A stretch of 56,792 nucleotides of DNA from contig NC_068989.1 of the NCBI RefSeq assembly GCF_001194135.2, positions 57,960,949 to 58,017,740 of the forward strand. The letters run 5' to 3'. This stretch comes from Octopus bimaculoides (taxonomy: Eukaryota). The position numbers were made by a program, and so were the translations under genes. Each line of letters opens with the position of its first letter. Within the stretch, counting starts at the first letter, position 1. The notes under the pieces are model-generated. The model was given only the letters and a program-made list of their open reading frames with translations. It had not been told where the DNA came from and ran no database searches. Positions 4,024-55,663 of this stretch are shown piece after piece.

Positions 4024-5333
4024 AGAGTTAGAGAGCTTCTACACATCAATCACAAATAGAATTAACATTACAATGACTAGCTAAAGTATTGATAGCAAGA
4101 TGGAAGAGTAACAGTATAAAGGCAGAGGCAAAATGGTTGAATGTGTGAGTGGGAATATATATATGTATACATAAATGTAAGATTCAGGGATCGAGGTGTA
4201 GGAAGAAAGTTAGCTCAAGCAATCTGTAGTAAATATAAAAAAACAACTTTCAGGGACAATAGTGGTTTATTGAGACAGAAGGTTGTGGATATTTTGCGTA
4301 TTGAAATACGATAAGCTGAAAAAAAGTTCTTTTTATCTTTCATGGTTGGCGACCAGGGTTGCCGGGTATGCAAAAAAGAATACAAGAGTTACAGAATGGA
4401 GTAGATAAGATCCGGGTTACCTATGTTTCATAGCGAGCGGAAACTCAGAAGTGGTAAATATCCAAGTGAGGTGCATACCACAGGCTACTCTTCAGGCCAA
4501 GGATATCTTGATTTATGATATATAGACACACACATATACATACATATATGCAGCTACATACAGATATAACACACACACACACACACTTGCACACTGAAGT
4601 AGATTTACTTACTTTATGATTGCAAATTGTATTTTGCAAATCTTCTGAATTTAATATTAAATCAGAAAATAATTTTATGCAGCAACCACAATGATTAACT
4701 TTCACTTCAAAACTACAAAGGTCAACTCTGTCTCCACCGTTTGGATGGGTCTTGTGATTTGACTTAGTATTATGAATTGCATCATTATTTTCCTGAGTAG
4801 GTTTGATTTTTTCCTGCAAAAATTTACTGACAAGTTGTCACATTTAAAGAGCTATTAACAGCCAGTTCCCATAAACCAGATGTAGTTCACCATAATTTAT
4901 TCAACATTATCTTTTATTTTTGAACAATTTTATCTTTTACTTGTTTTTTTTTCATTACACTGTATCCATGCTGGGGCACTGCCTTGAAGAATTCTTTTGT
5001 CAAAAGAATTGACGCAAGTACTTATTTTTGTTTTTAAGCCTGGTACTTATTCTATCAGTCTATTTTGCCAAACCACTAAGTTATAGGGACATAAACATAC
5101 AAAGTTGTCCAGGAAGACCCAAGCAAATACTGACAAATCGTAGCTGCAGCAATGTGCTGTGACAGCATGATTTTTATGGATGTTTGGCTTCTCTTTCTAG
5201 CTAGTTGAACAGCTGGATAGAGGTTCCTTGTTGGTTCAGACTGTTGACTATTTGTTGTTAGGTGCAGTGTGGCAAGCAGATCAGAATACACTATGAATTC
5301 ACTAATTTAGCTTCATTTCACATCACATTTACC

Positions 5334-6113: not shown

Positions 6114-6241
6114 GTACCTAACAGTCAAAAACAGCTACCAGACAGTGTTGTGGAAGATCTTCGCTCTATAGTTGGCAAAGAAAATGTGAGCGTATCACTT
6201 GCTGTTCGAGAACAACATGGACACGATGAATCTTACCATAA
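6114..6241 (+). CDS. LDHD: LDHD exon ([42 protein letters not shown])
   Basis: ttttctcag acceptor, GTAAG donor, 128 nt; VREQHGxDES motif. Confidence 0.93.
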
Positions 6242-9200
6242 GTAAGATTTCTAAAGTTCTACTTCTGATATATTTATAAGAATCATTGCTCTTTAGAAAA
6301 AGTTTTTTTTTTCAAAAGGTAATCTTGTTGTCCAACTTAATGTAGAGGTTGTATTAGAACACAGAATACTGCATTATTTACCTTGAGAACGTCTCTCATA
6401 TGGATTCATGGTGCATAGAAGCACTGTTATATCATTGGCAGACGAGAATCATCTGCTATGGTTTTCCGAATTGTCAGGTTACATGTGGCTGTTATGTTGC
6501 TGTTGGACATCTGTCACTGAGGAACTCATAGGAGGGTGAAACCACATGATCTGGCAGTCCCAGCAGCCATAGCTGGTGATTCTCATCCGTCAACGATATA
6601 ACAGTGCTTTTATGCACTATGAGTCCTTATGAGAGGTTCTCTCAAGACGAATAACGCAGTATTCTGTGTTCTAACACAACCTCCACATTAAGTTGGAGAT
6701 CTAAGTTACTTTTTGGTATTAATACCGCTTCTGCCACTATTAATTATTTCTTTCTTTCATTTACTGTTTATATGTAACCTTTTACTGAGTGAACTCCTTT
6801 ACTTCATAACACTACTTTAGAGAACTTGAAAAGCTTAGACATCGCTCCTCTTATTCAGAATGAGAAATAAACATAACATGGTTGCTTTTTCACTTTTTAG
6901 ACTCTTCATAATTAGGGGTACACAATTTAGACTCTTTATGATTTAGAGTACACAGCTTTTTTGTTTTGAAAGTAAATGACAGAAGAATATACTTATAGAT
7001 CCATTTATCACTCATAGGCTTTATTTAACTCTTTAGACTGGAGATGGGGGATGGTTAACTAAGTTAATGTTTTATGTCAATAGTATGAATTTGAACTGTG
7101 ATTAACCAGTGGTTGGAGTTTTCTGTGGATTTGTTTGTCTTGTTGATACATAATTATAGCTTGGTAATGCAGCTGAATTGTATAAATGTTTACCTTTATC
7201 TTACAACAGGTGCTTTCCCCCGGATGTAGTTACATTTGCTAATAGTACAAAAGAGGTCAGTGCTATTGCCAAATATTGTAATGACCAACGAATACCTCTC
7301 ATACCTTTTGGTTCTGGAACTGGCCTGGAAGGTGGAGTAACTGCCACAGTGGTGTGTATTATCTTTCTCTATCATCTATCTGATTGTCTCTCTCTGTTAT
7401 ATTACCATCATAATTAGATTGTTGAAAAATTTCTAATTTTGGTAACTATTTCAATATCATTACTTTTGTGTCTGCTTTTCCATGCTGATATGGGTTGAAT
7501 AGATCATTTTCAGCACACTTTCTCTCCATTTGCCACAGTTCATCATGTGTTTTGTGGGTCTTAGTATCTTCAGATTAGTCCTCGCCACATCTTGTTTAGT
7601 CTTCTACAGGCTTCTACCTGAATTATTTAGTGCATCTTCACCTGTCATTTCATGTATATCACATGTCCAAACTAGCAAAGTCTTCCTTGTTCATGCACAC
7701 TGTCGTTACCCATTTAGTCAAACATGGTCAATTCATTTGCTTCTAGCCTTTACATATCCTCCACATCATCACCCATGTTTTGTTACTATGCAATATTGTA
7801 CTCTATCCATAAAAAGCATCATACATTCTGCTTCTCATTCAAAAGAAGAACCCCTTTGTTGCCAGCATATGTAATAACTCCCTGAACGCCTTTGTCCAAT
7901 CCTCCATACTATAAATATAATAGCTCCCTGAAATTTGTCACCTGTTCCTGTTATGCTTTCATAACCCTAGAGTCCTGTTGAAGTAATTCTCTTAGTCAAA
8001 AAATAAGTGTAGTGTGCAAGAGAGACCACTGTACTGGTATGGCCATGTGATGCATATGGATGAGGACAGCTGTATAAAGAAGTGCCAATCTTTAACTGAA
8101 GAGAACTTGTGGAAGAGGTAGACTCAGGAAGACATGGGACAAGGTGGTGAAGCATGATCTTTGAATGTTGGGACTCACACAGCCAATGACAAGTGATCGA
8201 GACCTTTGGCAGTATGCTGTACTTGAGAAGACTTGTTAAGCCAAATGAAATCGTAGTTGTGCCGATGCTGGGGTCATGTAACTGGCACCCATGCTGGTGG
8301 CACGTAAAAGCACCCATGCCAGTGACATGTAGAAAGCACCCATTACACTCTTGGAAGGGCATCCAATCATAGAAACCATGCCAAATCAGACTGTAACTTG
8401 ATGCAGCTCTCTGGCTTACCAGTTCCAGTCAAACTGTCTAACCTATGCCAGCATGGAAAGCAGATGTTAAATGATGATGATGTTTGTTCATGGCTAAAAA
8501 CTTCACTTATAGTTGCTTCATTTGTAATGGTTCCATGTACTGGTACAAGCCCAAACTGCATCCCATCCAAATTGGTTTGTAGGAAAGTGGTTATACACCA
8601 TTAGGTGTACACCCGCTTCCGTACATTAAACTTCTTGAAGAAACAACGGAACGCAGATTCTGAACTATCAACACAACAATATTTATTTACAGAGGAAATA
8701 GGCAGCACTTCGCCCTTTTGTTGCTGAGATGCCGTCAATGATGTTGATGGTTATTTGTCTAGCTCCAGAGTTGGAATGTTGGAAAGAGCTGTCTCCAGAG
8801 TTGGAATGTTGGAGAGAGACTGCTTGTACGTCTGAGCTCTTCGCCGGCCGGCGAGAAAGAGAATGAAAAAAGGGCGCGAAGCTTGGGTGTCGAATGACCA
8901 CGCATGTGCACGAGACTCTTCCTGTATTCCTTCCGGAACTAGTCCCTGCGCATGCGTGGATAAGCTTTCTGGAATGTCTGCTATTAAGGCATCACTACAG
9001 GTTCTTTCCCTAATAAACTTTGTTACTTTTGTGCCTTGGTCAGTCAATGGTTACTACTTTGTTCTTACATTCATAGTAGTTCATGATGCCACTGTTATAT
9101 CAGTTATTAGTGGGGCATAACACATCACAGCATCACCTCATAGGGTGAAGAATACTGTCCTAGAACCGTGACTGCCTCTTTTTGGCTGAGAATGAAGGAC

Positions 9201-12200
9201 TCCAACCAGTTAAAAAGATTATCTTTCACACTCATTGCAGAGAGTTTTGCCATAAGTCTTTTGTGTGGTACAGAATTAAAAGCTTTAGCAAAGTTAAGGT
9301 AAACAACATCCACCTTGAGCTGCCATCAGTGACCTGGGTGATATCTTCAAGAAACATGACAAGTTGATCACAGCAGCTGGAGTTAGGGATAAATCCAAAT
9401 TGCGAGGGCCAGTGTTCCATATTTTTTTAATATTCTGAATCAACAAAGTAGCTTCAAACTTCTGAAAATACCAGCCAAATCTCCCTTAAATCTCACCACT
9501 GCCACCATCATTGTCATTTTAATGTCCACTTTTCCATGTTCATTTGGATTGGACAGAGTTTACTGAAGCAGATTTTCTGTGGCCAGATGCTCTTACCTGT
9601 TTCCAAGCTAGGTAATATTTTCACCATGGTCAAACATGTTTTCACAGAATACTAGAAATAAATGACAATCATTTACAACAATCATGCAATGTCAAGATAA
9701 GGAGTTACAAATATACACACTCAATCACTTACTCATACACACACACACACACACATGCACACAAACACACGCGTGCGCGCATACACACACACAATGGGTT
9801 TCTTTTAATTTTTGTCTATCAAATCTATTCACAAGCCTTTAGTCAACCCAGAGCTATAGCAGAAAACTCTTGTCCAAGGCACTATGCAGTAGGATTGAAC
9901 CTGGAACCATGTGGTTGGGAAGCAAATTTCATAACTATACAGCATGCCTCCACCAATCATTTCTTACAAAAAAAAGAAAGACAAGTGCAGATTAGATATT
10001 GTACTATTGTGTTTGAAAAAAAAAAAAAATGACAGTATGGTAACAGCTATAAAGCTTTTTTTTATAGGTTAGCTTTATCAGAATGTAACTGGAGCTAAAC
10101 AACGTGAACAACAGTAAACTGTTATTGTTGATTGTAAGAAAATATGCAAATTATGGGGAAACAATTTCACCAATGTAAGTCCATTAGTGTTAAAATTATT
10201 ATGTCTTGAATCATTATTGATTTTACCAAACCTGTTTATAAATTTCGATTCCTGATTTTGTCATAGTTGTATGAGTAGAGTCTGAAGCATTAACTTAGGT
10301 AGAGTTTTGTTTGGTGTGTACCCATTTCCCTTTTCATTACTTAGCCAGCAGAAATGTTTGACCTGATATCAGCCAAAATATTTAACAAGTAAAAAACAAA
10401 AGTAAATTTTTCTCAACATATGTAGTTAGTAATTGAATGTATTTTGCACTACTATTATATATTAACACATATCTACTAGAAATTCAGAAATTGTGATGGT
10501 ATGTACTTATATGTGTATCTTTGTTTGAACATATTCTTTAAAACACTCTGTGGGATTTTTTTATATTTTTTGTGTGTAACCCATAACTCACTATCTATGC
10601 TAACATGTTGAATACAGAACAAGATTGTGTATTTAATAAATAAAACAATTGTCAAAATAAATTTGCCTGAAAAAAAAAGTGTAATTTTTATTTTACTTTG
10701 TAAGCAACGATTAAAATTTTAACTGTCTGACTTCAATAATTTCTAAGACAGTAAAGCAGGTAGTTGACATAATTAGGTAAACAAATATGACAGTGACACA
10801 TAATTTATTTGTTGTATATACTGAATCGTGATAGGGATGATGTAAATGGTACATGACACGTGACCTCACTAGTGCCAGGTGCCATGGAAAAGCTCTCAGA
10901 ACACTCTGTGAAGTGGCTGGCATTAGGAAGAACATCAAGCCATAGAAATCATGCCTAAGTATACGTTGCAGGTTAATGCACACTCCTTGCATATATCCTG
11001 TTGAACCTTCCCACCCATAACAGCATGGGAAATGGATGTTAAATGATGATGATGCAATTGGTTTTAAATCTTGGCACAAGGCCAGCAAGTTGCAGGGTAG
11101 GGGTTAAGTTGATTACATTGACCCCAGTGCTCAACTGGTACTTATTTTATCGACCCTGAAAGGATGAAAGACAGAGTTGACTCTAGTGGAATTTGAACTC
11201 AGAAAGTAAAGATGGGTGAAATGCCACTAAGCATTCTGCCTAGTGCACTAATGATTCTGCTAGCTCACCGCCTTTGATGATGATGTAATTGAAACACAGC
11301 TAACTCTTCCTCTCTCTACCTATTAAACCCTCTCTAAGTAATTCATATCTCCTACTTCTTCTTGTACTAATCTTCTTTCTGATGTAATGAAATACAAAAT
11401 GCATGAAATTGTCTTCTGTCTGTTATATTACTGTCTTACAATATGTATCCTTATATAAGATAATGTGCATGTATATCAGCTAGTCTCAGTGTTCGGCAAA
11501 GGAGCTACTTCTGTTTGGCCACTCAACTTTATAAGAAGTCCTCTTTGTCTCTTTGAATCATTTATTATAATGCTCAGCTGATTTGTGCTTTTCTGTTTTC
11601 TTGCTCATTTCAGGGTGGTGTGTGTGTAGACTTGAGTAAAATGACAGAAATCTTTGATCTACACCAAGAGGACTTTGATGTAACAGTTGAGTGTGGAGTT
11701 ACTCGTAGAACATTAAACTCTCACCTAAGAGATACTGGGCTTTGGTTCCCTATTGGTTTGTAAAATTTCACTGAGTATTTCAATTCATGTTGCTAGTTTA
11801 ATGAGAAAAAATTGCTACATTTCATTAATTATCATCATATTTCAATAATAATAATAATAATAATAATAATAATCCTTTCTACTTAAGGCACAAGGCCTGA
11901 AATTTTGTGGGAGGGGACCAATCGATTACATTGATACCAGTGCTCAACTGGAACTTATTTTATTGACCCTGAAAAGGCAAAATCAACCTTGATTGAATTT
12001 AAACTCATCACGTAAACATGAACGAAATACCACTAAGCATTTTGAATAGTAATAATAATGAAGTTAAAATGAAAAGAATGGTTCTCAGTTTTATGTAGAA
12101 AAAAAATTTTTAAACTAAACTGGAGAATGGTTGTGGTACTTTTTAATGATTGTTTATTAAACGACTATTTCACTATGTATATTTGGGTATTGGCATGAGT

Positions 12201-13350
12201 TATTAGAGCAAGTAGTTTACAGGGCATCAAAATGCCTTTGCAGAAGGGCTCAGCCCAACATATCAGAATCACCGCACTAAACAACACATAAACATCTCCA
12301 CAAAATAGTGCAAATATTTTGATTAATAACTCGATAGCTCTCAGAAATCTGGGAAGAGATTTTCACAATATGATGGCATGCCTTGAACATTACAACTACT
12401 TATGGACATCAGACTAACCTTCAAGAGTTCATATTAGAATTTAAGCTCATCATTTGAAACTAACAAATTTTCCTTTTGTATAGTTATTTTACAGTTATGA
12501 ATTTTATAGATTGATTTTGTCTAATCAAACTAGTCAACTGATTGGTATCTTACATTAGCTGGAATATAAATCTATTCTTAAAATGGCTATTGAAATTTAT
12601 TTTATTTTGAATATAGTGGATGTTGTAAAGTTCTTGGCTTTGAGTAAAAGAAAATACAAGAGGATTAGTTAATTATGATTTTATTCAACATATTCCCTCC
12701 CAGAATAAGTGTGTGAATACTTATTGCAGCATTCCTTCAGTTTTCCTAAGCGCTGTAAAAGAACTCGGAAGGTTGGGCCTCCAACCAGGCCTTCCGCCAT
12801 ACCCTTGAAACTAGGAACTATTCAGTTATCCCTCATGATTATTTTTGTTATTGAATTCACTAATAAATACTTTTACATCATACATTTTGTTTTCAGATCC
12901 TGGTGCTGATGCATCCTTGTGTGGAATGTGTGCTACAAGTGCTTCTGGTACAAATGCTGTCCGTTATGGTACCATGAGAGAGAATGTCCTGAACTTGGAA
13001 GTGGTCTTAGCTGATGGCCGAATCATCAATACAGCTGGGAAAAACAGACATATGAAGTATGAAATGTTTGTCATTTACAGTTATGTGAATCTAGTCCACT
13101 GTTTGTAGATAATTATTATTATTATTTATTGTTATTCTGAGATGACAGAATCATTAGCACACTGGACAAAATGCTTAGTGGTATTTCATCCATCTTTATG
13201 TTCTGAGTTCAATTTCTGCCAAAGTCAACTTTGCCTTTTATCCTTTTGGGGGTTGATGAAATAAGTACCAGTGGTGCACTGGGGTTGATGCAATTGGCTA
13301 GCTCCCCCAACTCCTAAAAAGTTTCAGGCCTTGTGTCTATTGTAGAAAGG

Positions 13351-14082: not shown

Positions 14083-17000
14083 ATTATTACTATTATTAAT
14101 CAGGTCGCTGCCGTGAATCGTAATAATAATAGTAATAATAATAATAATATAATAATAATAATAATAATAATAGTAACATCGATAGGAATGAGAACCCAGG
14201 TTCGAAATTTCCCCAAGACACCTGACGAAGGCTGGAGGGTATATCAGCCGAAACGTTGTGTTAACAACAAACAAGATGAGGACGAATATCCGTCAAATGT
14301 AAATAATGTAAATAATTCCTCATCTCTTAAATATAGAACTGTCATTATTTCAGTTCGCAATTCTGCTGTCACTATAATCAATAGAGCTACCAGTCATGAA
14401 TTTAAGTTAATTCAGTCACCTGCTGTTGGTTCTTCTTCTCAGTGCATTTATAATATATTGTTCAAATATATATATACATATAAATAAAGTGAGTCCACAA
14501 CTGTAACCTACACCAGTGTCGCATAACCAGCCCCAGCCCACTCAAAAGTACCTTGGATCGTAGGGCAACATGCCATGCTTGAGGAGACCTATTGAGTCAA
14601 GTACATCAACATCAGCAATATCAAAATCAAATCAAATGGAAATTGTAGTTGTGAGCCGTGTGCCAGTAGCACGTAAAAAGCACCATCTGAACGTGGCCGA
14701 TGCCAGCACCGCCTTGACTGGCTTCTGTGCCCGTTGCATGTAAAAAACAACATCCGATCGTGGTCGATACCAGCACCTCTGGCCCCTGTACCAGTGGCAG
14801 GTAAAAAGTACCCACTACACTCTCATAGTGGTTGGCGTTAGGAAAGGCATCCAGCTGTAAAAACACTGCCAGATCAGATTGGGGCCTGGTGCAGCCTCCT
14901 GGCTTCCCAGACCCCAGTCGAACCGTCCAACCCATGCCAGCATGGAAAACGGACATTAAACGATGATGATGATGATGATGATGATGTTCATGCACACTTA
15001 CATCGTGCATCTAACAGTGTGTGCTCACTTCATTTCTTTCTAGTTTTCTCTGGTCTTCTACATTCAAGGATCTGTATCTCACTACCATGCAGCATCATAG
15101 TTCTAACACAAGAGTCATACAAACTGTCCTTCACTTTGAGAGGGAAAAGACTTTCGTTGCCAATTTGTGTGGACTTGGAATTGAAACAAAAAATTAAGTC
15201 TTCGTATCAGTGATTGCAAGGGCTGTGAGCTGGCTGAATCATTAGCACCCAGGGCGAAATGCTTAGCAGCATATCATCAGTGTTTACATTCTGAGTTCAA
15301 ATTCTGTTGAGGTCAACTATGCCTTTCATCTTTTCTGGGTCGATAAAATAAGTACCAGTTGAACACTGGGATTGATGTAATCAACTTATCCCCTCCCCCG
15401 AAATTGCTGGCCTTATGCCAAAATTTGAAGCCATATTAGTGATTACTTACATACACACTCACACACAACCATACATGTGCATACACACATTCATATACAC
15501 TGGTTAATAACCACATATTTCTTTACATTTTACTTGGATGAACTCCTTCCATTGTTGCCAGAAACTGTACATATTTTCTTGGCTTTGTATATATTTTGTT
15601 TGCAACCCTGCTATTTGTCAAAAGTTATTCCTTATTTTTCCCAGAAAGACATCTGCTGGTTATAACCTAACAAATTTGTTTGTTGGAAGTGAAGGAACTC
15701 TGGGAATTATTACAAAAGCTACTTTGAAATTGTATGGACAACCTGAAAAGGTAAGTTAGTATCAGATCATCATCATTGTTACTATTTTAATGTTCACTTT
15801 TTGCAGATGAGGCTTATTGAAGCAAATTTTTATAAAGCTGAATGTGCTTCCTGTCATCAATCCCTACTTGTTTCCAAGTAAGGTACTACTCTCCATGGTT
15901 TGCACAACAAACAGCTCAGAGGCCATACCTGTTTTTACAGTTAACATCGGCAAAGAAGCTGTTTTTTAGTTTATGCAATGTCCTGGGTGTCACTGGTTAC
16001 ACATCTTGCACACAGCATCAAGATAATAGGAATAAGCAATCATACATACACATTGATTGCACTCATTCAAGCACACATGCTACATAATTCATGTTTTTCA
16101 ACGCTGCTATTTGTCATTCTCAAGAATTGACAAATTATTCCTTATTTTTTCCAGAAAAACATCTGCTGGTTATAACTTAACAAATTTGTTCATTGGAAGT
16201 GAAGGAATTCTGGGAACTATTACAAAAGCTACTTTGAATGCAAGCACACAGGCTACATATATTTTTCCTCCTTCCCATTTCTGTATCACTTTCATCCTCA
16301 CAGCTTTCTACATTTTGTTCCTCTTCTCGTGCATATTTACTTTAATTACACAGTTACCCAGCCTCTCACTTTTTAGAATTCTCTCTCTCTTTTTCTCTTT
16401 TATGTCTCTCTTTCATTTCCTCCCCTATTATAACTCCAATCTTAACACACACACACACACTCTCTCTCTCTCTCTCTGACATTTTATTATTAAACAAGCC
16501 CCTGCCATCACCGCCATTTACCATTATCATATGTCATTTTTATTTTCTTTTTTCTCTTGTTTTCTTTGTTTTTTCTCGTGTATATCTGCCTCTTTTTTTG
16601 TCTCCCTCACTCATATCCTATTTTCTTTAATGTTTACTCTCACTGTACTTGTATATTTTATTATTTCTGTTTGTCTGTCGCTCTCTCTCTTTCTCTCTCT
16701 CCCACCATTCACTTATCAATTATCAACGTCACTAATGCTGCCTCTACCACTATCATAACTACCGTTTTTTTTTTGCGATCACTGAGTTATCTCCCTTAGC
16801 ATGCCACAAACCATTGGTAGGTATTGGTATAAATAGATTACACTGTCCTCATTTAACGACCGAGTTACGTTCCAACAGCCCCGTCGTTAAGCAAATTCGT
16901 CGTTAAACGAATATTCATAGGGTACGTATTTTTTTTTATAGGTATAGTGTACTGTACGTACATATAAAAACAGAATACCGTACTGTATAAAGTATATGCA

Positions 17001-20000
17001 GTACAGGGTCAAGAATCACTAACATAAATTGTTGAAAAATGAATAAGTAACTGTAAGATTATCACAAGGAAAACCTTAAAAGTTAGGATATGGATACTGT
17101 ATTATTGTAGCTCAGACATCGTAAGTATGTTTGTGATTCCAGGCCCAGTACATAAGATGCCTAATAAACTTTTCTCAGGATTATATAGAAAAGGTTTAAA
17201 GGAAACTCANNNNNNNNNNNNNNNNNNNNNNNNNNNNNNNNNNNNNNNNNNNNNNNNNNNNNNNNNNNNNNNNNNNNNNNNNNNNNNNNNNNNNNNNNNN
17301 NNNNNNNNNNNNNNNNNNNNNNNNNNNNNNNNNNNNNNNNNNNNNNNNNNNNNNNNTTTCGTCATAAATTTCTCGATAACATTGAAAAAGTCCAAGAGAT
17401 AATGGAAAAAAGAGACGAAATAGTAATATAGGTACAGAGAGCGTCACTGTGTTGCCTGGCTGACCACAGGCGGGAGAGTGAGAGAGCGAGCGTGTCGGAG
17501 GGTGAGTCTGGGTGCTCGGGATGCGCTGCCGTCCGCTGCCATCACGACGGCAGTTCTTGTACAGCGCACAATACGACAGTCAAAGTTTTTAAGTTTTTAT
17601 ATTTTGTAAAATATGTTATGACGGCTCGTAAAGTTCGTCGTAACTCCGAGTGGTCGTTAAATAGGTAGGTCGTTAAATGAGGACAGTCTGTATTGATATA
17701 CTGCAATAGCAAACCGGTCCATTATATTTTTATGTATATCACTGTCATTTTGTGATATTCACTTAGCTGGTGAGTATACCAAATCTACTCGCAAAACTTT
17801 GGTCGACTGCAAGGCAGTAACAGAAGATACGGTCCCACTGTGGGACTGAACTCAAAACCATGTGGTTAGGAAGTAAACTTTTTTAACCACACAGCTATAC
17901 CTGCACCCTTTTATGTATATTTAAGTATATTATTGCTTAAAAGTGATAGCAACATAACCATTATATATTTATAAATATTACTGCTATACTGTAATAGTGT
18001 TCTAAAACTTGATGCAGTATCTATATATTCTTGTTTGCCATTGCAGACTATTTCAGCTGTTTGCCATTTTCCCTCTGTGCAAGCGGCAGTAGACACGACG
18101 GTGATGACTTTGCAGTGTGGTATTCCCATAGCAAGAATAGGTACGTATACAAAATTAATAGGTTTACTTTCGTAATATTGTATTCTCTATAATTCTGTTT
18201 GTATTGATATTATCCTTGTTTGTTGTTTCCTGGTTCTAAGTTGTGTTCTAAGAACATTGGATTTATCACTTACTCATCTCTTTACTTTTTGCCACATGAT
18301 AATGCAGTCAAACAAAAATTTCTTGTGGCATTAATTCTGCCTGAATAGCACAAACATAATCATCCCAACTTTTTTACATTTTGCCAGATACAGTATATTT
18401 AGGATCACATTAACCATTATGTTCATTTTTTGAAACAACAGACTGTGATTTGAGGAAGATTTGGCTGTTATTACTAGCAAATCAAATGACTGTGTTGACT
18501 TATATGGTGTTAGCATGAGATGTGAATAATTCATAGATTTTAATGGATTGTTACACACACATCCTTGTCACAGTTACCATTGAAATGGTGTGGATCTGTG
18601 ATTTCTCCATTGGAAATCTGTACTCAGGCTGGCTGTGGACAAATGTACCACCATGCATTTTGGGAGGAAAAACCCAGTGTCTACTTACTCCCTCCACAAC
18701 ACTAATCTCAAAAAGTCTTCTTCCGAACATGACCTGGGCATTATTGTCGACAGCGATTTGCATTGGACAAAACACATTACTAAAATTACCAAGAAGGCTG
18801 AGGGTGTCTTGGTATTACTTACCAAGTCCTTTGTGAGCTGCTCTCTGGCTATCTATCTGAGGCTTTATATAGTTATGGTGTGGCTTCACCTGGAATTTGC
18901 ATCACCGGTCTGGAACCCCTATCTTGCCCATGATATTAATCGTCTGGAAATCGTTCAGCGACGTGCAACCAAGAGAATACCCTCCATCAGGCAAAGGGGA
19001 GGGGGCAGGTGGGAATGCAATTCTGTGGGAGTGGAGTTAAGAAGGAAAGGTGAGACTGATTTGTTTTAGCCAGTATAAAAATGTCTATAGAGAAAAAATT
19101 CTTGTGACAGTTTATCTTAGAGTGTAATATCTAGTGTGTGCTTCTTAAGACATAGTAGGTAATTTGAGGAAGATTTGGCCGCTATTTCTAGCTGGTCAAG
19201 CAACTGCATAGAGGCACTCTCTTTGACTTAAGTGAAAATGGGTATTAAGTATTTGCTGCAGAGCTATTTTGTCACATACAATAACAACAAATCTAAAGTG
19301 GAGAAATGAACAAGCAAAGAAACAAAAATATTGAAAATAATTTGAGATTGATCATGAACTTAAATTGAATATTTAGGAAACTTGTTTATTGCTTCAATCT
19401 ACATTTTTTTCTACTTAGAATTCATGGATGAAGTTATGATTGATGCCTGCAACAAATATAGCAAACTCTCACTAAATGTGGCACCAACGCTTTTCCTGGA
19501 GTTCCACGGTGCTGCAGAATCACTGAATAGTCAAGTGGAAACAGTCTGTATGTATTTAAGAAATTTATTAAAATACCTCTTTTGTTAGCATATGTACACA
19601 TTAATAGATTTTTTAATGTATATATGAGGAGGTGCTGTAAAGTTTCTGGCTTCAAGTAAGCGAAAATACAGAGGATTAGTTAATTATGATTTTATTCAAC
19701 ATATTCCCCTCTCAGATTCACACACTTATTGCAGCAGTCCTTCAGTTTTTCTAAGCCCTGTAAAGGAACTTGGAAGGTTGGGTCTCTAACCAGGCCTTTT
19801 GCGATACCCTTAAAGCCAGGAACTTTACAGCACCCCCTTGTATATACCAGGAGCATGCTATCTCCTGTAGTCAAGATAACTTGTGTCGACACAGACTAAA
19901 TCTATAAATCTTCTTTCATCATCATTATTTAATGTTCATCTTGCTTGCTGGCATGGGTTGGACAGTTTGACAGAGGACTGTGTTGAGTTCCAATATATGC

Positions 20001-23000
20001 TTTGGTACAGTTTCTATGGCAGAATGTCCTTCCTAATTCCAACCACTTTGCAGAATATATTTGGTACTTTTTACACGGTACCAGCACTAGTGTGGCTGCT
20101 AACGAACTCACAAAACAAGACCCCCCCCTCCCCACACACACATTCAATTGAGTGGAAGTGCAGTATTTATTATTGTCTATACTCAAGAACACCTGGCATA
20201 AAACCCACTTCCCTCAATTCTGCTATAACATTTATTAACGCCTTAGCATTTAAACCTGCCATATCCAACCCATATATTCTACCTATTTTATGTTCAGACT
20301 AACTAGATCTGGCCTCTTCCACCTATCCTACAATATCATTCTAAAAATAAGCAATCACATCATAAAAATTTCAAAGGTACAAGATAATACATGATTAATT
20401 CAAAACAATGTGAATAAATAAACATTACATTTGACAGAATAATATGAATGCTAAAGGGTTAAAGTTGTTTAAATTTAAGATTACACATATGATAGCTTCA
20501 TTTCTTGAAACTTCAGACTGTAATGAGAAACTTGAGAAACTTTTGAAAATATTGCATGTGTAAGACAATTCTTTCCTTCCTTACCCCACCCCTTGATTCC
20601 TGCTAAAGTTATAGGGACACCTTCATGGCATATAGCATCTCTTGGGAATTTTAAATCTGGCAGTGACCATCTTCTTTGTCTGCCCAGGATCTGCTTCTTA
20701 CAGAGAGAAAGGAGAGAAAGGGATTGATCATAGTACAGAACTGGTACTTTATTTTATTGTCCATGAAAGGTAAAGTTGATCTCATTGAGATTTGAACTCA
20801 ATCACAGAAAACAGGAAAGAATACTGTATAGCATTCTCTCTAACAGTCTAATGACTCTGGCATTTCACAATCTTATAAACTAAATCTGGAGTTAGAGAAG
20901 AGGGAAGAATAGATGAATAGAAGTCTGCTAGTGAATGTGACCAAGGCATTATTGTCTACAATGATTTGTGTTGAATGAACCACATTCCTAATAATCAAAA
21001 AGGCCAATAGTGTCTTAGCAATTCTCAGTAAGACCTTTGTCAGCTACTCACCTGTTATCTATTTAAAGCTATATATAGCTATGGTACATCCACACTTACA
21101 TTTTGTTTTTCTCATCTAGAACCCCCATCTTGTCCAGAATATCAATCTACTGAAAGCTGTCTAGGAATGTGCAACCAAACAAATACCCCTCTGTCACTCA
21201 CCATATCTTGAACATTTTGCTTCTCTGGGCATCAACATGTTTAAAGTTTCAATGTCTAGCAGCTAACTTGGTTGAAGCCCACAGAATTATCCACACTCTT
21301 TCCAACAACTTTGGTTATCTTTTTCAATTCAATACCTCTACAACTTACGAACATTTTTATATAAAATCAAAAATCAACACAATACCCATGACTTTTGAAA
21401 ATATCTTTTTGCTTACATTTTAGGTGGAGTTTAATTATCTTTATTATAATTTAGTTTTCTATCTGTTAAGTCTGAATTAACTTTCACTAATTTAATGTAA
21501 TGTCCAAACAATATATCTGTTGTTTAGCTTATTTTTGCTTATCATGTCTTTGCTTTGTTATAAATTTTTTTTCTCTATAAACTTTCAAAAGGTGAAATAG
21601 CCAAATCTAATGAAGGTTCCGACTTTAAGTGGGCTACAGATGCTGATGAAAGAAACAAGTTATGGAGAGCTCGGCACGACATGTTGTATGCATGCCTAGC
21701 TCTCCGGCCTGGCTCAAAGGTAGGTTATCATGCTTAGTGTCTTTTTGTCTGTCTTCCCGTTCTGAGTTCAAATTCTGCCAAGGTCCTTTCATTCTTTTGG
21801 GGTTGATGAAATAAGTACCTAGTTAAACACTGAAGTCAATATAATTGACTCCAAATTCCAGGCCTTGTTCCTATAGTAAATTTTCAGCAGTTGCATGCAT
21901 ATGTATAAATAGTTGGTGAAAGCCCTGGTGGCATGAGCAGCAGCTCGCAACCTAGCTTAGTACCCACTCCGAGCCAAATAGGGGAAAATTCCTCGGTCAG
22001 GCAGTTAGAAACTGAGGACAGGCACACTTTTGCTGTAAGCTGTCACAGAGTATAACCAACTGATATGGGGTAGAGGTCACTGTTGGGCTTGATGAGACGA
22101 AATAGTTTGGCCCCAAAGAACAAGGGATGAATGTAGGCAAGGACACTCAGACAAGAACAAGTTTATAAACTGTGTTAGGTTCTCCAAGAGTTTGAGCCCA
22201 GCTTCATCAGCTAATGGAGATAACATGCTTGAGATGCTGAGGTCATAATCCATTGATCTCAGCACCAGAATCTGCTGGAAAAGAGTCAATTACCTTTCTG
22301 ACATTGTCAGGGGTTAAAGATGGGTTGTTGAAAACTTGGTGGGTCAGGCCAGTGTAGGTGATCATCTGGAGAGGCCAAAGGAAGTTTCTCCTTCAGTTGG
22401 TTGAGGGAGTCTGTGGTACACAGGACGAGGAAAGAAGGCAAACAGCCCTTTAATGTAAAATTTGCTGAATTTAGCATTAACAACCTTCAAGTTAGGTGGT
22501 TGATCATTGTTCAGGGTTGAGCTGATGACTGACTTGAGATGAACAGTAGTTGGGGTAGATTTGAACTGCCATTTCAGGGAAGGAGTGAGGGATCCACTAT
22601 TCCCATTCATTACATGGAGGGAGACCAAAGCGAACAGGAACAATTTCTGCCAATCCGAGGTGTTGATGGATAGGCAGATGTTCTTCAGCAGTTTTGAGAG
22701 AACACGGGTGAAACAAATTTGAGCACCCTTAGGGATCTGATTGACGAGCGTCAGCTTGAACAAACCCTAGAGAGTAAAAGAATGAAAATAGCAATTTTAC
22801 TTTTTATAATTTTAGGATACATTGTCGTGTAACACAGGATAATATAATAATATTGGAATGTCGGTGCTCCAGCATGGCTGCAGTTAAATGACTGAAATAA
22901 GTAAAAGAATAATGTAATGCTGTTGTAATTTCCCATAATACATTGTTTTCTCTTTCTTTCAGCCATATAGTACAGATGTGTGTGTACCAATTTCCCACCT

Positions 23001-26000
23001 GCCAGAAATAATAGTTGATACTAAAAAAGACATAGAAGAATCAGGAACGACAGGTAAACATATTCTCTAAAGCAGTGGTTTTCAACTAGGGTCCATATGG
23101 CCCTTGGGGGTGTGTGTGAGATTTTCTTATTAAAATTAATGTACAATAAATTGTTTATACTTTTACAATACAAGAAATATTTAAGTTTTTATTACAAATT
23201 ATAATAGGCACAGGCATGCCTCTGTGGTAAGAAGCTTGCTTCCCAACCACATGGTTCCAGGTTCAGTCCCACTGTGTGGCACCTTGGGCAAGTGTCTCTC
23301 ACTATAGTCTCAGGCTGACCAAAGCCTTGTGAGTGGATTTGGTAGACGGAAACAGAAAGGCATGTAAGGGTTTTTAACCCTCTCCATTATAATTGTGATT
23401 TATTCACAATTATTGCACTCTTCTCATATAATAATTTTTTGATCGCATGTTCTGGCCACTGATATATTCGTGGATAATTTTGAATTGTCTACAATATATC
23501 CCGCATAGTGTATTTTTACATTCATTCCCCTTTTATTATTTATTTTTCACTCATATCTGATTCTTCACAGTGGCTAGTTCAACTGGTCTCCTATTATGAA
23601 TGCTGTGCATGACGTTTGAATTCAGAATTTGAATTGTGTAGATAAATGTTGACACATTATTCTTGCTGGTTGGGACACATATTAAGCCCCAAGGTGTTTT
23701 TTTTGTGTTAAAATCTATGTACAGGAATGTTCTCCTGAAAAGAAGAATGGATCCATTTTTGGTTCCTAACTTTGAAATTTCAATGGAAGGACTATTATTT
23801 TTATTTAGGTTTTGAATTTTATGTCATATCACTTGCTAATAGCATTTATAGTTGAGGAGAAAGAATATGAATGATTATATTGGCTTTATGGCGGTTTTGA
23901 CTGCTATTTCTAGGCATGTAAGGGTTTTTAACCTTCTCCATTATAACTGTGATTTATTCACAATTATTGCACTCTTCTCATATAACAATTGTTTGATTGC
24001 ATATTCTGGCCACTGATATATTCGTGGATAATTTTGAATTGTCTACAATATATCCTGCTTAATGTATTTTTACATTCATTTTCCTTGAGGTGGTGAAGCA
24101 TGACCTTNNNNNNNNNNTTACATTCATTTTCCTTGAGGTGGTGAAGCATGACCTTCGAACATTGGGCCTCACCGAGGCAATGACAAGTGACTGAGACCTT
24201 TGGAGGTATGCTGTGCTTGAGAAGACCTGGCAAGCCAAATGAGACAATAACCGTGGCCTATGCCAGTGCTGTATAACCAGCTCATTTAAGAATACCCTTC
24301 AATCATTGGACAATAAACTACGCCTGTGAAGACCTGTTGAGACAAGTGAAATCATTATTGTGGCCAATGACAGTACCGCCTGATTGGCACCCATGCCAGT
24401 GGAACGTTAAAAGCACCATTCGAGTGTGATCATTGTCAGGGCCGCTGACTGGCTCCCATGCTGGTAGCACATAAAAAGCACCATTTGAGCATGATCGTTG
24501 CCAGCATCACCTGATTGGCTCTTTTTCCAGTGGCACATAAAAAGCACCATTCGAGCGTGGTCATTGCCAGTGCTACCAGACTGGCCCCTGTGCAGGTGGC
24601 CTGTAAAAACCACCATTTGAGTGTGGCCAATGCCAGTACTGCCTGACTGGTGGCATGTAAAAGCACCCACTAAACTCTTGGAGTGGTTGGTGTTCGGAAG
24701 GGCATCCAGCTGTAGAAACTTTGCCAGATCAGATTGGAGCCTGGNNNNNNNNNNNNNNNNNNNNNNNNNNNNNNNNNNNNNNNNNNNNNNNNNNNNNNNN
24801 NNNNNNNNNNNNNNNNNNNNNNNNNNNNNNNNNNNNNNNNNNNNTTCGCTCAATAAACACCCACAACGCCCGGTCTGGGAATTGAAACCGCGATACTATG
24901 ACCGCAAGTCTGCTGCCCTAACCACTGGGCCATTGCGCTTCCACAATAAATAAAAGGTTTTATTAATATTAAAAAAAGATTTAAAAAAAAAAAACTACTT
25001 GTTTTTAAGTAATCTAAACTTAAACCTTCCATAAAGATTTCTGGTTAATTTATGTTCCAGACACCAGCTTCAAATATTTATTTTCAAAATTAATTGAAAC
25101 AAATTTCAACAGAAATCTAGTAACAAAAGGTTTTTAAAATGATCTAAATTAAAACTCTCCTTCCAACTTATTTTATTAGTTTATCTTCTAAGCACCAACT
25201 TTATAATGACTGAGTTATTTTACTAAATTCTTTTCATGAATGTATTTGTGTGTGTGTGTATGCATGTATTCTATCAATCAATCAATTGATCAGTCCTTTA
25301 TTCTTACATTTCTTTTTCCAAGGTCCAATTGTTGGTCACGTTGGAGATGGTAATTTCCATGTATTTTTCCCAGTCATGCCAGACAACGCTGAGGAAAAGC
25401 AACTGATTAATGATTTAGCTGATCGTATGGCCAAGTGAGTGCAATTTCTACATTAAATGTTTTCCATTTCTAGGTTTTGTTGTGGGTCATGTTGGTGATG
25501 GAAATTTTCATTCTCTGTTTACTTTTGACCCCAATGACCAAAATGAATTTAGAAGGATAAAGAAAATTGCTGATAAAATAAATATGTGAGTATTCAATAC
25601 ATGATATTTAGTGATATTCACTAAAAACTACTGTATAATCATTTCTTTTAGCCAATGTAATATGTTGGCTGGTTGATTCTTCCAGTCACACTTTACATCA
25701 CATAGAGAGAGAGGTAGAGAGGGGTAGAGAGAGAAGAGAGAGGTGCAGGATGAGTGTACATACTGAGTTTGGTAGAAGGTAATGCGTAAAGAAATGTGTA
25801 GTGAAACTACCTATCGTCACTAGATACAAAACTACCTATCGCCATTAGATACAAAACTACTATTGCCATTACATACAATCTTCTCATTTAAATATAAATA
25901 AATGTGAGCGTAGTAGAGAACCCATTCCTTGTCATCACGTGACTGATTAATATTCGAATCGGCAACTTCTTCGAACCGNNNNNNNNNNNNNNNNNNNNNN

Positions 26001-49472: not shown

Positions 49473-51011
49473 CAGGTCAAATGAATGATCAAACTTGAAC
49501 TGTCTGTAGGTTTTGCTTTTCTATTGGAGATCAATATATTAACCAATGGTGATAGAAGTATTGATTTCAGATAAGGTAGAAATTAGAGTTGTGATATTCA
49601 TATTTTTTCCAGTGTCATTAAGGTAACAACTGACACAAAATGGCTTCAATTGTACAATAGTATAGCATATATTGTAATCTCTCTCTCTCTCTCACAAAGA
49701 GAGACAGAGAGAGAGAAAGAGACAGACAGAGACAGAGACAGAAATATATACATTTCCCTTGTAAAACATTATTACACACCTTTTCCTTTGAGCTGTATTA
49801 TAAACTCTATCAATAAACAAGAAGTAAAGGTTCTTATTCATTTCATCTCACCTTCCTTCTTTTCTTTTTAATTATTCTTTTAAGGAAGGAAATCCTTTAT
49901 AGGTGCGGACACACACATATGAAGCTCGCGTCTGAACACGATCACAGTCCATTGACTAATTCCACAAAAGGAGTTCTAAACATAACAGACTGTAGTAATC
50001 TGTAGTTGGCAGAATATTAGACTATTTGAAAAAATAACTGTGAACATAAATTACACTCTTATATGTTTTGAGTTCAAATACCACCAAAGTCAATTTCACT
50101 TTTCTTTCTTCTGTGGTCAACAAAATAAATATTACTCAAGTATTGGGTTGATTCAATATTTCTATAAAGGATACTCAATATGACTGGAATTATATAATAG
50201 AGGTCTAAGACTGTATAGTAAAGAAATTAATATAAGTTCTTGAGATTAATACTACAGAGTGCTTCACAATAAAATGCAAAACTTGCTGTCTCCTCTCTCT
50301 CTGTTTTCTGTTGTTACTATTATGGTCTCTGTTCCTCAGAACTGGAGGGCATCATGCTTCCACCATTCAAGCAACCCTGATCCACTTGTTTTTCTTCCTC
50401 TCGTCTCACATGGTGCATTGAACCCTGTCCCCCTTTGATCCCTGATTAACCATAGTGCTCATTCTTTGCCTATAGAATTTTTCCCTGTTTGTGTCTTTCC
50501 TTCAACAGTTTAAACAGAATAATATTGGTTTCTGATTTAGGTGCAAAGCCAACAGTTTTGAGGGAGGTTATAAGTCGATACCATCAATCTCAGTATGTGA
50601 TTGGTACTTTATTTCATCAACCCCTAGGGAATGAAAAGCAAAGTTGACCCTGATAGTATAAGGATGTAATGAGCCAGGACAAATTGCTTATTACAATTCT
50701 ACCAGCCATAGAACAATAATCCTTTCTATTATAGGAACAAGGTCTGAAATTTGGGGGAGGGGGAGAGTCGATTACATCGACCCCAGTACTCAACTGGTAC
50801 TTAATTTATCGACCCCGAAAGGATGAAAGGTGAAGTTGACCTGGGTGCAATTTGAACTCAGAACATAGCGATGAGCATAATACTACTAAGCATTTCATCC
50901 AGCATGCTAACAATCCTGCCAGCTCACAACCTACCTAAATGGAATAACAATGGCAACAAACTCGCTGGTCTTGGAGAGCCTGGAGAGGTATTAGACAATA
51001 TTCCATCCTCC

Positions 51012-51300
51012 AGCACGTGCAAAGGACATGCCTGTATGGGTGGCTGTGATTTTACTTTGCTTGATGTGTAATCACTACAACTCCCAGTTCCTTGTCATTT
51101 CCTCAGTAGGGGTCAGCGTCTGAAGATGTTTTCTCACCACTTTGCCCCACGCCTTCCTGGGTCTACACCTTCCACGGGCTCCTTTCACAATTAGGGATTG
51201 ACATTTCTTTAAGTAGCTGTCCTCATCCACATGCATCACATGGCCATACAAGTACAGTCTTTACTCTTGCACATAACATCTGATGACTTTCATACTGTTT
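51012..51300 (-). mobile_element. RTE-like LINE C-terminus; its 3' about 110 nt recur at 53116-53224
   Basis: YGHVMHVDED...GRCRPRKAWGKVV; near-identical 110-nt duplicate. Confidence 0.7.
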
Positions 51301-52674
51301 TCCTCTTAAATCATTTACAATGAAAACCATTCAGAAGGCAATTTTGCATGGTAGCCAACACAGTTTCACATGAGCAATGCAACAATCCTGCATGACTATT
51401 TTTTTTTTGTTGGCACTCCGTCGCTTACGACGTCGTGGGTTCCAGTTGATCCAATCAACAGAACAGCCTGCTCGTGAAATTAACATGCAAGTGACTGAGC
51501 ACTCCACAGACACGTGTACCCTTAACGTAGTTCTCGGGGATATTCAGCGTGACACAGTGTGACAAGGATGACCCTTTGAATTACAGGCACAACAGAAACA
51601 GGATGTAAGAGTGAGAGAAAGTTGTGGTGAAAGAGTACAGCAGGGTCCGCTACCATCCCCTGCCGGAGCCTTGTGGAGCTTTTAGGTATTTTTGCTCAAT
51701 AAACACTCACNNNNNNNNNNNNNNNNNNNNNNNNNNNNNNNNNNNNNNNNNNNNNNNNNNNNNNNNNNNNNNNNNNNNNNNNNNNNNNNNNNNNNNNNNN
51801 NNNNNNNNNNNNNNNNNNNNNNNNNNNNNNNNNNNNNNNNNNNNNNNNNNNNNNNNNNNNNNNNNNNNNNNNNNNNNNNNNNNNNNNNNNNNNNNNNNNN
51901 NNNNNNNNNNNNNNNNNNNNNNNNNNNNNNNNNNNNNNNNNNNNNNNNNNNNNNNNNNNNNNNNNNNNNNNNNNNNNNNNNNNNNNNNNNNNNNNNNNNN
52001 NNNNNNNNNNNNNNNNNNNNNNNNNNNNNNNNNNNNNNNNNNNNNNNNNNNNNNNNNNNNNNNNNNNNNNNNNNNNNNNNNNNNNNNNNNNNNNNNNNNN
52101 NNNNNNNNNNNNNNNNNNNNNNNNNNNNNNNNNNNNNNNNNNNNNNNNNNNNNNNNNNNNNNNNNNNNNNNNNNNNNNNNNNNNNNNNNNNNNNNNNNNN
52201 NNNNNNNNNNNNNNNNNNNNNNNNNNNNNNNNNNNNNNNNNNNNNNNNNNNNNNNNNNNNNNNNNNNNNNNNNNNNNNNNNNNNNNNNNNNNNNNNNNNN
52301 NNNNNNNNNNNNNNNNNNNNNNNNNNNNNNNNNNNNNNNNNNNNNNNNNNNNNNNNNNNNNNNNNNNNNNNNNNNNNNNNNNNNNNNNNNNNNNNNNNNN
52401 NNNNNNNNNNNNNNNNNNNNNNNNNNNNNNNNNNNNNNNNNNNNNNNNNNNNNNNNNNNNNNNNNNNNNNNNNNNNNNNNNNNNNNNNNNNNNNNNNNNN
52501 NNNNNNNNNNNNNNNNNNNNNNNNNNNNNNNNNNNNNNNNNNNNNNNNNNNNNNNNNNNNNNNNNNNNNNNNNNNNNNNNNNNNNNNNNNNNNNNNNNNN
52601 NNNNNNNNNNNNNNNNNNNNNNNNNNNNNNNNNNNNNNNNNNNNNNNNNNNNNNNNNNNNNNNNNNNNNNNNNN

Positions 52675-55571: not shown

Positions 55572-55663
55572 NNNNNNNNNNNNNNNNNNNNNNNNNNNNN
55601 NNNNNNNNNNNNNNNNNNNNNNNNNNNNNNNNNNNNNNNNNNNNNNNNNNNNNNNNNNNNNNN

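Follow-up and report, generated by a model that had tools for sequence, protein, structure and literature searches.

Alpha-tropomyosin exons 2 and 3 are a mutually exclusive pair of the type backed by a short intron and by nonsense-mediated mRNA decay (NMD). An intron that is too short and a frameshift leading to NMD are both recognised classes of mutually exclusive splicing (PMC6071210), and the FGFR2 IIIb/IIIc pair is cited there as one of the steric, NMD-backed type. Among mitochondrial metabolic enzymes, coq-2 carries the exclusive exons 6a and 6e in nematodes, flatworms, annelids and molluscs (PMC7434440). Exon 10 of the alternative oxidase (AOX) gene of the oyster Crassostrea virginica is tandem-duplicated, and its divergent form is induced by air exposure (PMC5589949). 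Here we analyse a window of 56,792 nucleotides, the whole stretch of Octopus bimaculoides DNA under study (NC_068989.1, positions 57,960,949 to 58,017,740), which contains on its + strand LDHD, the gene for the mitochondrial, FAD- and Mn-dependent D-lactate dehydrogenase. In this gene an exon that encodes part of the active site is present in two tandem versions, and we consider it likely that the pair is a mutually exclusive splice switch yielding two enzymes with different substrate pockets.

The exon map was obtained by placing full-length LDHD homologues on the window with tblastn and by setting the splice sites by eye and with a script; the exon numbers are our own (Table 1). LDHD has 11 exon positions across 6114-29167, preceded in the RefSeq model by a start exon of 12 nt. 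Because the translation from 6114 of the isoform with the first version of the duplicated exon (11A) is identical to residues 5-472 of XP_052826876.1, titled 'probable D-lactate dehydrogenase, mitochondrial [Octopus bimaculoides]' in RefSeq, the gene in the window is identified as the LDHD of this species. The isoforms carrying exon 11A or exon 11B (hereafter A and B) both match the FAD_binding_4 and FAD-oxidase_C domains (PF01565, 122 bits; PF02913, 234.5 bits for A and 243.4 bits for B). The C-terminal 125 residues of the A form matched mouse LDHD (8jdc) at E=1.3e-43 and D2HGDH at 4.8e-11, and a Foldseek search with the B model returned 8jde first (TM 0.92/0.95). Moreover, the best database matches to the octopus protein carry the name LDHD. 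Judged by solved structures and orthologues, the octopus protein is nearest LDHD, not D2HGDH or GlcD.

Exons 11A and 11B are each 112 nt long and lie 39 nt apart. Each is preceded by a pyrimidine tract and AG (..ttccaag before A, ..tttctag before B, both followed by G), and each is followed by a GTGAGT donor in phase 1. They are identical at 60/112 nucleotides and at 17 of 38 residues, and over the 10 codons of the catalytic motif they show five differences, all synonymous. With the exon A peptide as query, tblastn against the 56.8-kb window found exon B at E=2.7e-8 and everything else at E≥0.4, so the likeness between the two is not due to chance. Eight further genomes carry the pair at this position. 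When either exon alone was joined to the flanking exons 10 and 12, an open frame of 468 amino acids was obtained from exon 2. Joining both gives ..AKFCCGSCW and then a stop, eight codons into B, and with both skipped the altered frame meets a stop 16 codons into exon 12. All of this agrees with an earlier note made from the same sequence alone. That note had claimed two tandem 112-nt exons with AG acceptors, GTGAGT donors, a common phase and a 39-nt spacing, which could be read directly; splicing of each in frame to 23053 and 28993, which gave the intact frame; and a premature stop or a frameshift on inclusion or omission of both, which translation reproduced. Its counts, 5 synonymous and 0 non-synonymous differences in the motif and 17/38 residues overall, were the same when recounted. 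No third copy of the exon was detected by tblastn with both peptides in the window or in the O. sinensis locus, although the assembly gaps at 24745-24844 and 25979-26435 could hide sequence; these two N runs lie in the introns flanking the pair and leave the exons and the spacer untouched. As read from the sequence, octopus LDHD contains a tandem-duplicated exon pair whose architecture fits mutually exclusive use.

As the A donor and the B acceptor are only 39 nt apart, the branch site of B would be located about 20 nt from the A donor, too close for the spliceosome. The spacer could then not be removed as an intron, so that A and B could not be joined and each mRNA would contain one of them. 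As a back-up, the length of 112 nt (3n+1) would cause the joining or the skipping of both exons to end in a premature stop, probably followed by mRNA decay. Mutual exclusion by an unspliceable short spacer plus a frameshift is the most likely mechanism, with the 39-nt distance pointing to the steric block. The spacer is below the minimum spliceable length here and also in O. sinensis (39 nt), Argonauta hians (38 nt), Saccostrea (26 nt) and Lottia (42 nt), and that of Pomacea (66 nt) is borderline. The sequence of the Argonauta spacer is nearly the same as in Octopus, which fits constraint on this element. Searches for docking and selector RNA structures gave none that was convincing, the short AT-rich inverted matches (such as 25070-25084 with 25575-25589) being at chance level. 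Conservation of the flanking introns was also considered as a mark of regulated splicing and looked positive at first; it was discarded, as the introns next to constitutive exons proved to be conserved to the same degree.

The enzymatic meaning of the swap can be read against mouse LDHD, which recent work has established as a general D-2-hydroxyacid dehydrogenase. In the mouse enzyme Mn2+ is bound by His398, His405 and Glu442, the substrate is held by Arg347 and His443, and the substrate side chain is received by a hydrophobic subsite B, composed of Val101, Trp351, Ser365 and Ile407, which sets the substrate range (PMC10589216). Human D2HGDH has Asn443 at the position of Ile407, and this residue contributes to the different pocket of that enzyme (PMC10589216). 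With mouse numbering fixed by alignment and by the H405A mutant chain present in the same search output, the two histidines of GHVGDGNFH correspond to His398 and His405, and Ile407 to the residue two places past the second histidine (His+2). Of the three metal ligands, two are encoded by the swapped exon and are the same in both versions; it also encodes one of the four subsite-B residues. Where mouse LDHD has Ile at this His+2 position, octopus A has Phe (HVFF) and octopus B has Leu (HSLF). The equivalents of Arg347, His398, His405, Glu442 and His443 are all present in both isoforms, with the GEHG motif kept. In AlphaFold models the two isoforms agree in secondary structure (strand, turn and strand at 384-391, helix at 396-415), with predicted local distance difference test (pLDDT) values of 85.5 for A and 85.0 for B, and of ≥87 over the swapped segment. 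From alignment and models, the 38 swapped residues are predicted to form a strand-turn-strand bearing both Mn-binding histidines, followed by a helix. Two proposals of the earlier note, that this exon carries the two metal-site histidines and that its versions differ in a pocket-lining residue, were borne out by this mapping. The modelling that it had suggested as a check gave the same secondary structure and confidence for A and B, with the B model placed on mouse 8jde at the TM values given above.

These data suggest two enzymes that would share the same chemistry, A with a tighter side-chain pocket and B with a roomier one. The two would differ in their preference for D-lactate versus bulkier D-2-hydroxyacids, A acting as the default form and B as a minor or conditional form.

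The pair is not peculiar to the octopus. When database matches to the full-length B isoform were inspected, the mollusc LDHD proteins among them proved to be of two kinds. The A type, with GP[IM] before the catalytic core and [VI]F[FY]P after it, is highly conserved and near the single exon of the chiton; the B type, GHVGDGN[FI]H-x-[L/V/A]-[F/L], is far more variable. For 13 mollusc species RefSeq contains an A-form and a B-form isoform differing only in this segment, in models that have either A or B, never both or neither. These are O. sinensis (X1 = A, XP_029641646.1; X2 = B, XP_029641647.1), Saccostrea cucullata, S. echinata, Ostrea edulis, three Mytilus species, Pecten maximus, Ruditapes philippinarum, Pomacea canaliculata, Haliotis rufescens, H. 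asinina and Gigantopelta aegis. The genomic order is A then B in O. sinensis (pair at 54036-54298 of the locus), Argonauta hians, Saccostrea, Lottia, Pomacea and Aplysia. The pair thus occurs across cephalopods, gastropods and bivalves, with a parallel in crinoids, and is not specific to the octopus. The comparison with related genomes, bivalves included, that the earlier note had suggested found the A-then-B arrangement in the oyster Saccostrea, with the 26-nt spacer. Degeneration of B in related cephalopods, on which the note had also proposed a check, was not seen in O. sinensis or Argonauta, where frame and length are intact and the AG acceptors and GTGAGT donors of the pair are kept. In the chiton Liolophura and the annelid Owenia there is one exon, and no trace of a second was found.

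In Aplysia californica, an intact B-type exon of 109 nt with AG and GTGAGT (18903-19011 of the locus) lies ~537 nt 3' of the annotated exon, and the only Aplysia LDHD protein listed is without it. The B exon is absent from the annotation of both O. bimaculoides and Aplysia. In the scallop Ylistrum balloti, one contig contains two LDHD genes, the second with a B-like segment, and a 644-aa model from a rotifer, Rotaria sp., contains two LDHD C-terminal halves and is probably a fusion of two neighbouring genes. Some lineages may have reached two enzymes via gene duplication, not exon duplication.

Outside the molluscs, the crinoids Antedon and Anneissia have isoforms (RefSeq X1/X2) that differ only in this same segment, and in the Anneissia japonica genome the two exons are in tandem at 9891-10002 and 10250-10361, 247 nt apart. 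A starfish and hemichordates show one form. Crinoid type 1 resembles mollusc A in its Phe at His+2 and its Met at position 36 of the segment, and type 2 resembles mollusc B, with Ala or Val at His+2 and Val at position 36. His+2 is Phe in every mollusc A form and Leu, Val or Ala in every B form. Among 12 mollusc A exons, 11 have Met at position 36, the exception being Argonauta with Ile; all aligned B exons have Ile or Val there. The His and GDGN residues are invariant in the 15 B-type exons examined (15/15).

From this recurring difference a broader proposal can be drawn, which we put forward tentatively and would not yet bet on. A pocket-size switch would have arisen at least twice, or be very ancient, its copies always differing by Phe versus a small aliphatic residue at His+2 and by Met versus Ile/Val in the packing helix. 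Tissue, oxygen or diet would toggle the enzyme between a narrow, D-lactate-type and a broad D-2-hydroxyacid dehydrogenase. If true, this would be the counterpart of the coq-2 switch for D-lactate and methylglyoxal metabolism in animals that accumulate D-lactate.

A different function for a real switch is possible, if on balance improbable: mainly through the divergent helix, it could tune metal affinity, rate, stability, contacts with redox partners or subunits, or behaviour with temperature or pH, and not substrate range. As many as 21 of the 38 residues differ, most of them outside the pocket in helix 396-415, the second type-specific position (36, Met versus Ile/Val, crinoids included) lies in that helix, and a single one of the four subsite-B residues is encoded by this exon. 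Yet His+2 is the sole substrate-facing difference that is constant across all taxa, and the same position separates the pockets of LDHD (Ile) and D2HGDH (Asn), whereas neither the residues nor the charge of the helix are conserved among B exons. The shift in net charge of the helix part, from about -2 in A to about +1 in B, was found as the earlier note had described it in O. bimaculoides, but it is not a conserved property, the O. sinensis B helix being at about -1 and other B exons not sharing the shift; it was consequently dropped as a functional difference.

Regarding the age of the pair, its presence in cephalopods, gastropods and bivalves agrees with the old duplication proposed in the earlier note. 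The simplest reading of these comparisons would be a single duplication in conchiferan molluscs before the cephalopod/gastropod/bivalve split, because order, tiny spacer and the states at His+2 and position 36 are shared in three classes. It is unlikely, though less so than decay of exon B (considered below), that the pairs of cephalopods, other molluscs and crinoids are all independent duplications and that the octopus pair is younger than it looks. Such origins are documented for mrp-1 exon pairs, as cited in PMC7434440 and PMC6071210. They would fit the single exon of the chiton and of Owenia, the presence of a pair in crinoids against one form in a starfish and hemichordates, and the identities outside the invariant core, where B exons of different mollusc classes (24%) are no closer to one another than A is to B within a species (27%); A exons across classes share 49%. 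However, the same order with the conserved A first, the tiny spacers in a cephalopod, a bivalve and two gastropods, and the 'H-x-[LVA]-[FL]' and Ile/Val at position 36 common to all B exons argue against this. In neighbour-joining trees of the 38-aa segment, cephalopod A and B grouped together in 0/300 bootstraps, and all B types, crinoid type 2 included, fell on one side with bootstraps of 1-11%. The tree was not retained as proof of dating, given these values and the likelihood of long-branch attraction. For crinoids, we tend to favour an independent duplication over a bilaterian origin with many subsequent losses.

Divergence between the two Octopus species gives a more complex picture of selection. 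For the rest of the coding sequence, synonymous (dS) and non-synonymous (dN) divergence are 0.137 and 0.027, with a ratio (omega) of 0.19. Exon A shows a dN of 0.074 and, on its own high dS, an omega of 0.19. Exons A and B are the least conserved of the gene (88% and 82% nucleotide identity versus 92-98% for the others), and B has diverged more than its flanking introns (~93%; binomial P=3e-5). Between Octopus and Argonauta, exon B has a dN/dS of ~0.39 (P=0.04 against neutrality). In the three octopods it keeps its frame, exact length, splice sites and catalytic residues, at a synonymous divergence of 0.65-1.2, near saturation. Our reading is that the catalytic core has been under purifying selection over the long term, while pocket-side and helix residues changed fast and perhaps adaptively. 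The purifying selection on both copies asserted in the earlier note is upheld over the long term, with the motif invariant in all B exons, but not within Octopus, where B is the fastest-evolving exon.

Several observations weigh against a working switch in O. bimaculoides. RefSeq gives this species the A form only, and the transcript-derived mollusc LDHD proteins inspected in Logan are all of A type. A thus has the look of a default form, and O. bimaculoides may use B rarely, under certain conditions or not at all. The dN of exon B between the Octopus species (0.167) is about the gene-wide dS (omega 0.48), which taken alone fits relaxed constraint, and B differs there at 12 of 38 residues, His+1 to His+3 among them (SLF versus IAL). 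Finally, the tiny spacer is not universal, and because Aplysia and the crinoid have long ones (~537 and 247 nt) steric exclusion is not the sole mechanism across taxa; in these animals the frame rule or something else alone can apply. In the transcript searches, the 125-aa A-form query yielded only an old 77-aa RefSeq fragment, and no member of the octopus cluster is derived from transcripts. The top match in the representative library with two matched stretches was set aside as a mis-built vertebrate model, not a protein with both exons. That exon 11B is a dead or decaying relic in O. bimaculoides, with only the A enzyme made and B inclusion amounting to splicing noise, would fit the A-only annotation, the fast divergence of B and the fact that the Octopus pair alone does not reject neutrality, but is made quite improbable by the intact B exon in three octopods, by its O. 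sinensis orthologue in a RefSeq isoform and the persistence of B exons in gastropods and bivalves, and by an AlphaFold model of B as confident as that of A.

The features of the gene are collected in Table 1. The 12-nt start exon (MVEC) of the RefSeq model encodes no mitochondrial presequence, and the exon 1 of O. sinensis (MAFRVLRL..., MAFRVLRLGRILSHSGAMSRCLTT) had no match anywhere in the window; by synteny it should be located a few hundred bases 5' of the window start. In oyster, chiton, Pomacea and Lottia, a ribosomal protein L14e gene lies head-to-head immediately 5' of LDHD (minus strand, 1 to ~1700 of the loci); in octopus this microsynteny falls outside the view, as the 5' end of the gene is missing from the window.

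Table 1. Coordinates of the LDHD exons and of the spacer between the paired exons in the window.
Feature	Position	Strand	Remarks
First coding exon	4133..4144	+	12 nt, ATGGTTGAATGT then GTGAGT, 'MVEC'; used in XP_052826876.1
LDHD exon 2	6114..6241	+	tblastn with LDHD homologues and splice sites
LDHD exon 3	7210..7351	+	Donor GTGTGT, giving ..GGVTATV; agrees with XP_052826876.1
LDHD exon 4	11614..11755	+	Homologue mapping and splice sites
LDHD exon 5	12897..13056	+	Homologue mapping and splice sites
LDHD exon 6	15645..15750	+	Homologue mapping and splice sites; 106 nt
LDHD exon 7	18047..18140	+	Homologue mapping and splice sites
LDHD exon 8	19419..19547	+	Homologue mapping and splice sites
LDHD exon 9	21592..21719	+	..ERNKLW..; equivalents of Arg347 and Trp351 (residue names: PMC10589216)
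LDHD exon 10	22963..23053	+	Constitutive, 5' of the pair; phase-1 end; equivalent of Ser365 in PYSTDVCVP
Exon 11A	25323..25434	+	112 nt; conserved form, His+2 = Phe; in XP_052826876.1 and XP_014781592.1
Spacer A/B	25435..25473	+	39 nt, gtgagtgcaatttctacattaaatgttttccatttctag; donor of A, pyrimidine tract and AG of B
Exon 11B	25474..25585	+	112 nt; divergent form, His+2 = Leu; outside the RefSeq model of this species
Last exon (exon 12)	28993..29167	+	Ends LLPA and TAA stop; equivalents of Glu442/His443 (GEHG)

Besides the paired exons, the gene contains a partial tandem copy of exon 6 and of the end of its upstream intron at 16155-16239, ~90% identical over 85 nt. Homology stops at ..TTGAAT|GCAAGC with no GT donor, and the length of 85 nt is by chance in phase with the 106-nt exon 6. 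The truncated copy is also present in O. sinensis (24450-24533 of the locus) and not in Argonauta, and is probably a dead pseudo-exon. A 66-bp tandem repeat occurs in ~4 copies in the intron 5' of exon 11A (24371-24650), and is also listed at 14659-14812. In the same intron of O. sinensis it has grown to an array of ~11 kb (~40600-51700 of the locus), which accounts for much of the larger size of that gene (~80 kb). Runs of N mark assembly gaps at 17210-17356, 24108-24117, 24745-24844, 25979-26435, 29859-30169, 40733-40742, 51711-52674 and 55572-55663. Downstream of LDHD (29200-56792), mostly simple repeats and gaps were found, with no convincing protein-coding open reading frame and no Rfam family; an Rfam scan of the whole window gave no match.

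LDHD is the enzyme that removes D-lactate, and the choice between the conserved exons would replace one of its four subsite-B residues. Cephalopods and gastropods are reported to contain far more D- than L-lactate (Ohmori 1997, as cited in PMC7490090 and PMC10918092). This citation backs the remark of the earlier note on D-lactate accumulation and gives the switch a plausible physiological setting. Since the pair has persisted in three or more mollusc classes and has a counterpart in crinoids, it offers a natural experiment on what determines substrate range among these enzymes. No relevant paper came up in full-text searches that combined LDHD or D-lactate dehydrogenase with mutually exclusive exons, exon duplication, alternative splicing or oyster. 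The claim that the switch had not been described stands as far as these searches go, but A and B isoforms are already in RefSeq for O. sinensis and the 12 other molluscs. The LDHD pair is real, old and biochemically suggestive; it is recorded in automated RefSeq isoform models, and its mechanism is not new.

As to mechanism, the closest relatives are alpha-tropomyosin and FGFR2, which like LDHD have a cluster of two exons, an intron too short for spliceosome assembly, exon lengths that are not multiples of three and a stop upon double inclusion. They differ in that their block was shown by experiment, whereas that of LDHD is suggested by the 39 nt and fails in Aplysia and the crinoid. Vertebrate OGDH 4a/4b, as outlined in PMC7969005, resembles LDHD in being a mitochondrial dehydrogenase with a pair of alternative exons; exclusion of the OGDH exons is enforced by intron geometry, as predicted for LDHD. 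There, however, it is distant branch points in a longer intron that are involved, and the swapped part is a Ca-sensing regulatory region, not the active site. Mouse LDHD itself (8jdc/8jde; PMC10589216) shares 60% identity, the fold (TM 0.92-0.95) and the named catalytic residues with the octopus enzyme, but one version of the segment, with Ile at His+2, is present in the sequence and structures examined, where the octopus gene offers Phe or Leu.

In biological terms LDHD would stand as a further case beside coq-2 and oyster AOX, in which invertebrate mitochondrial metabolism is retuned by exon choice and not by gene duplication. The oyster AOX gene (PMC5589949) is likewise a mollusc gene for a mitochondrial oxidoreductase with a tandem-duplicated exon, one copy conserved and the other divergent around functional sites. 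Its duplicated exon is the last one and is chosen by alternative 3' splicing, whereas the LDHD exons are internal and separated by a spacer below spliceable length. With coq-2 6a/6e (PMC7434440), LDHD has in common homologous exons of the same length in a mitochondrial metabolic enzyme, exclusive in coq-2 and probably so in LDHD, the remodelling, predicted for LDHD, of a substrate site by a few invariant changes, Phe/Leu among them, and an occurrence in invertebrates facing hypoxia. The coq-2 pair is absent from vertebrates, and mouse LDHD shows one version of the segment in the sequence and structures examined. The two differ in their taxa, the LDHD pair being found in conchiferan molluscs and crinoids and not in the annelid examined. 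They also differ in that the ubiquinone versus rhodoquinone function of the coq-2 exons and their regulation were shown by genetics and RNA-seq, whereas the two LDHD functions are those suggested by the pocket residues.

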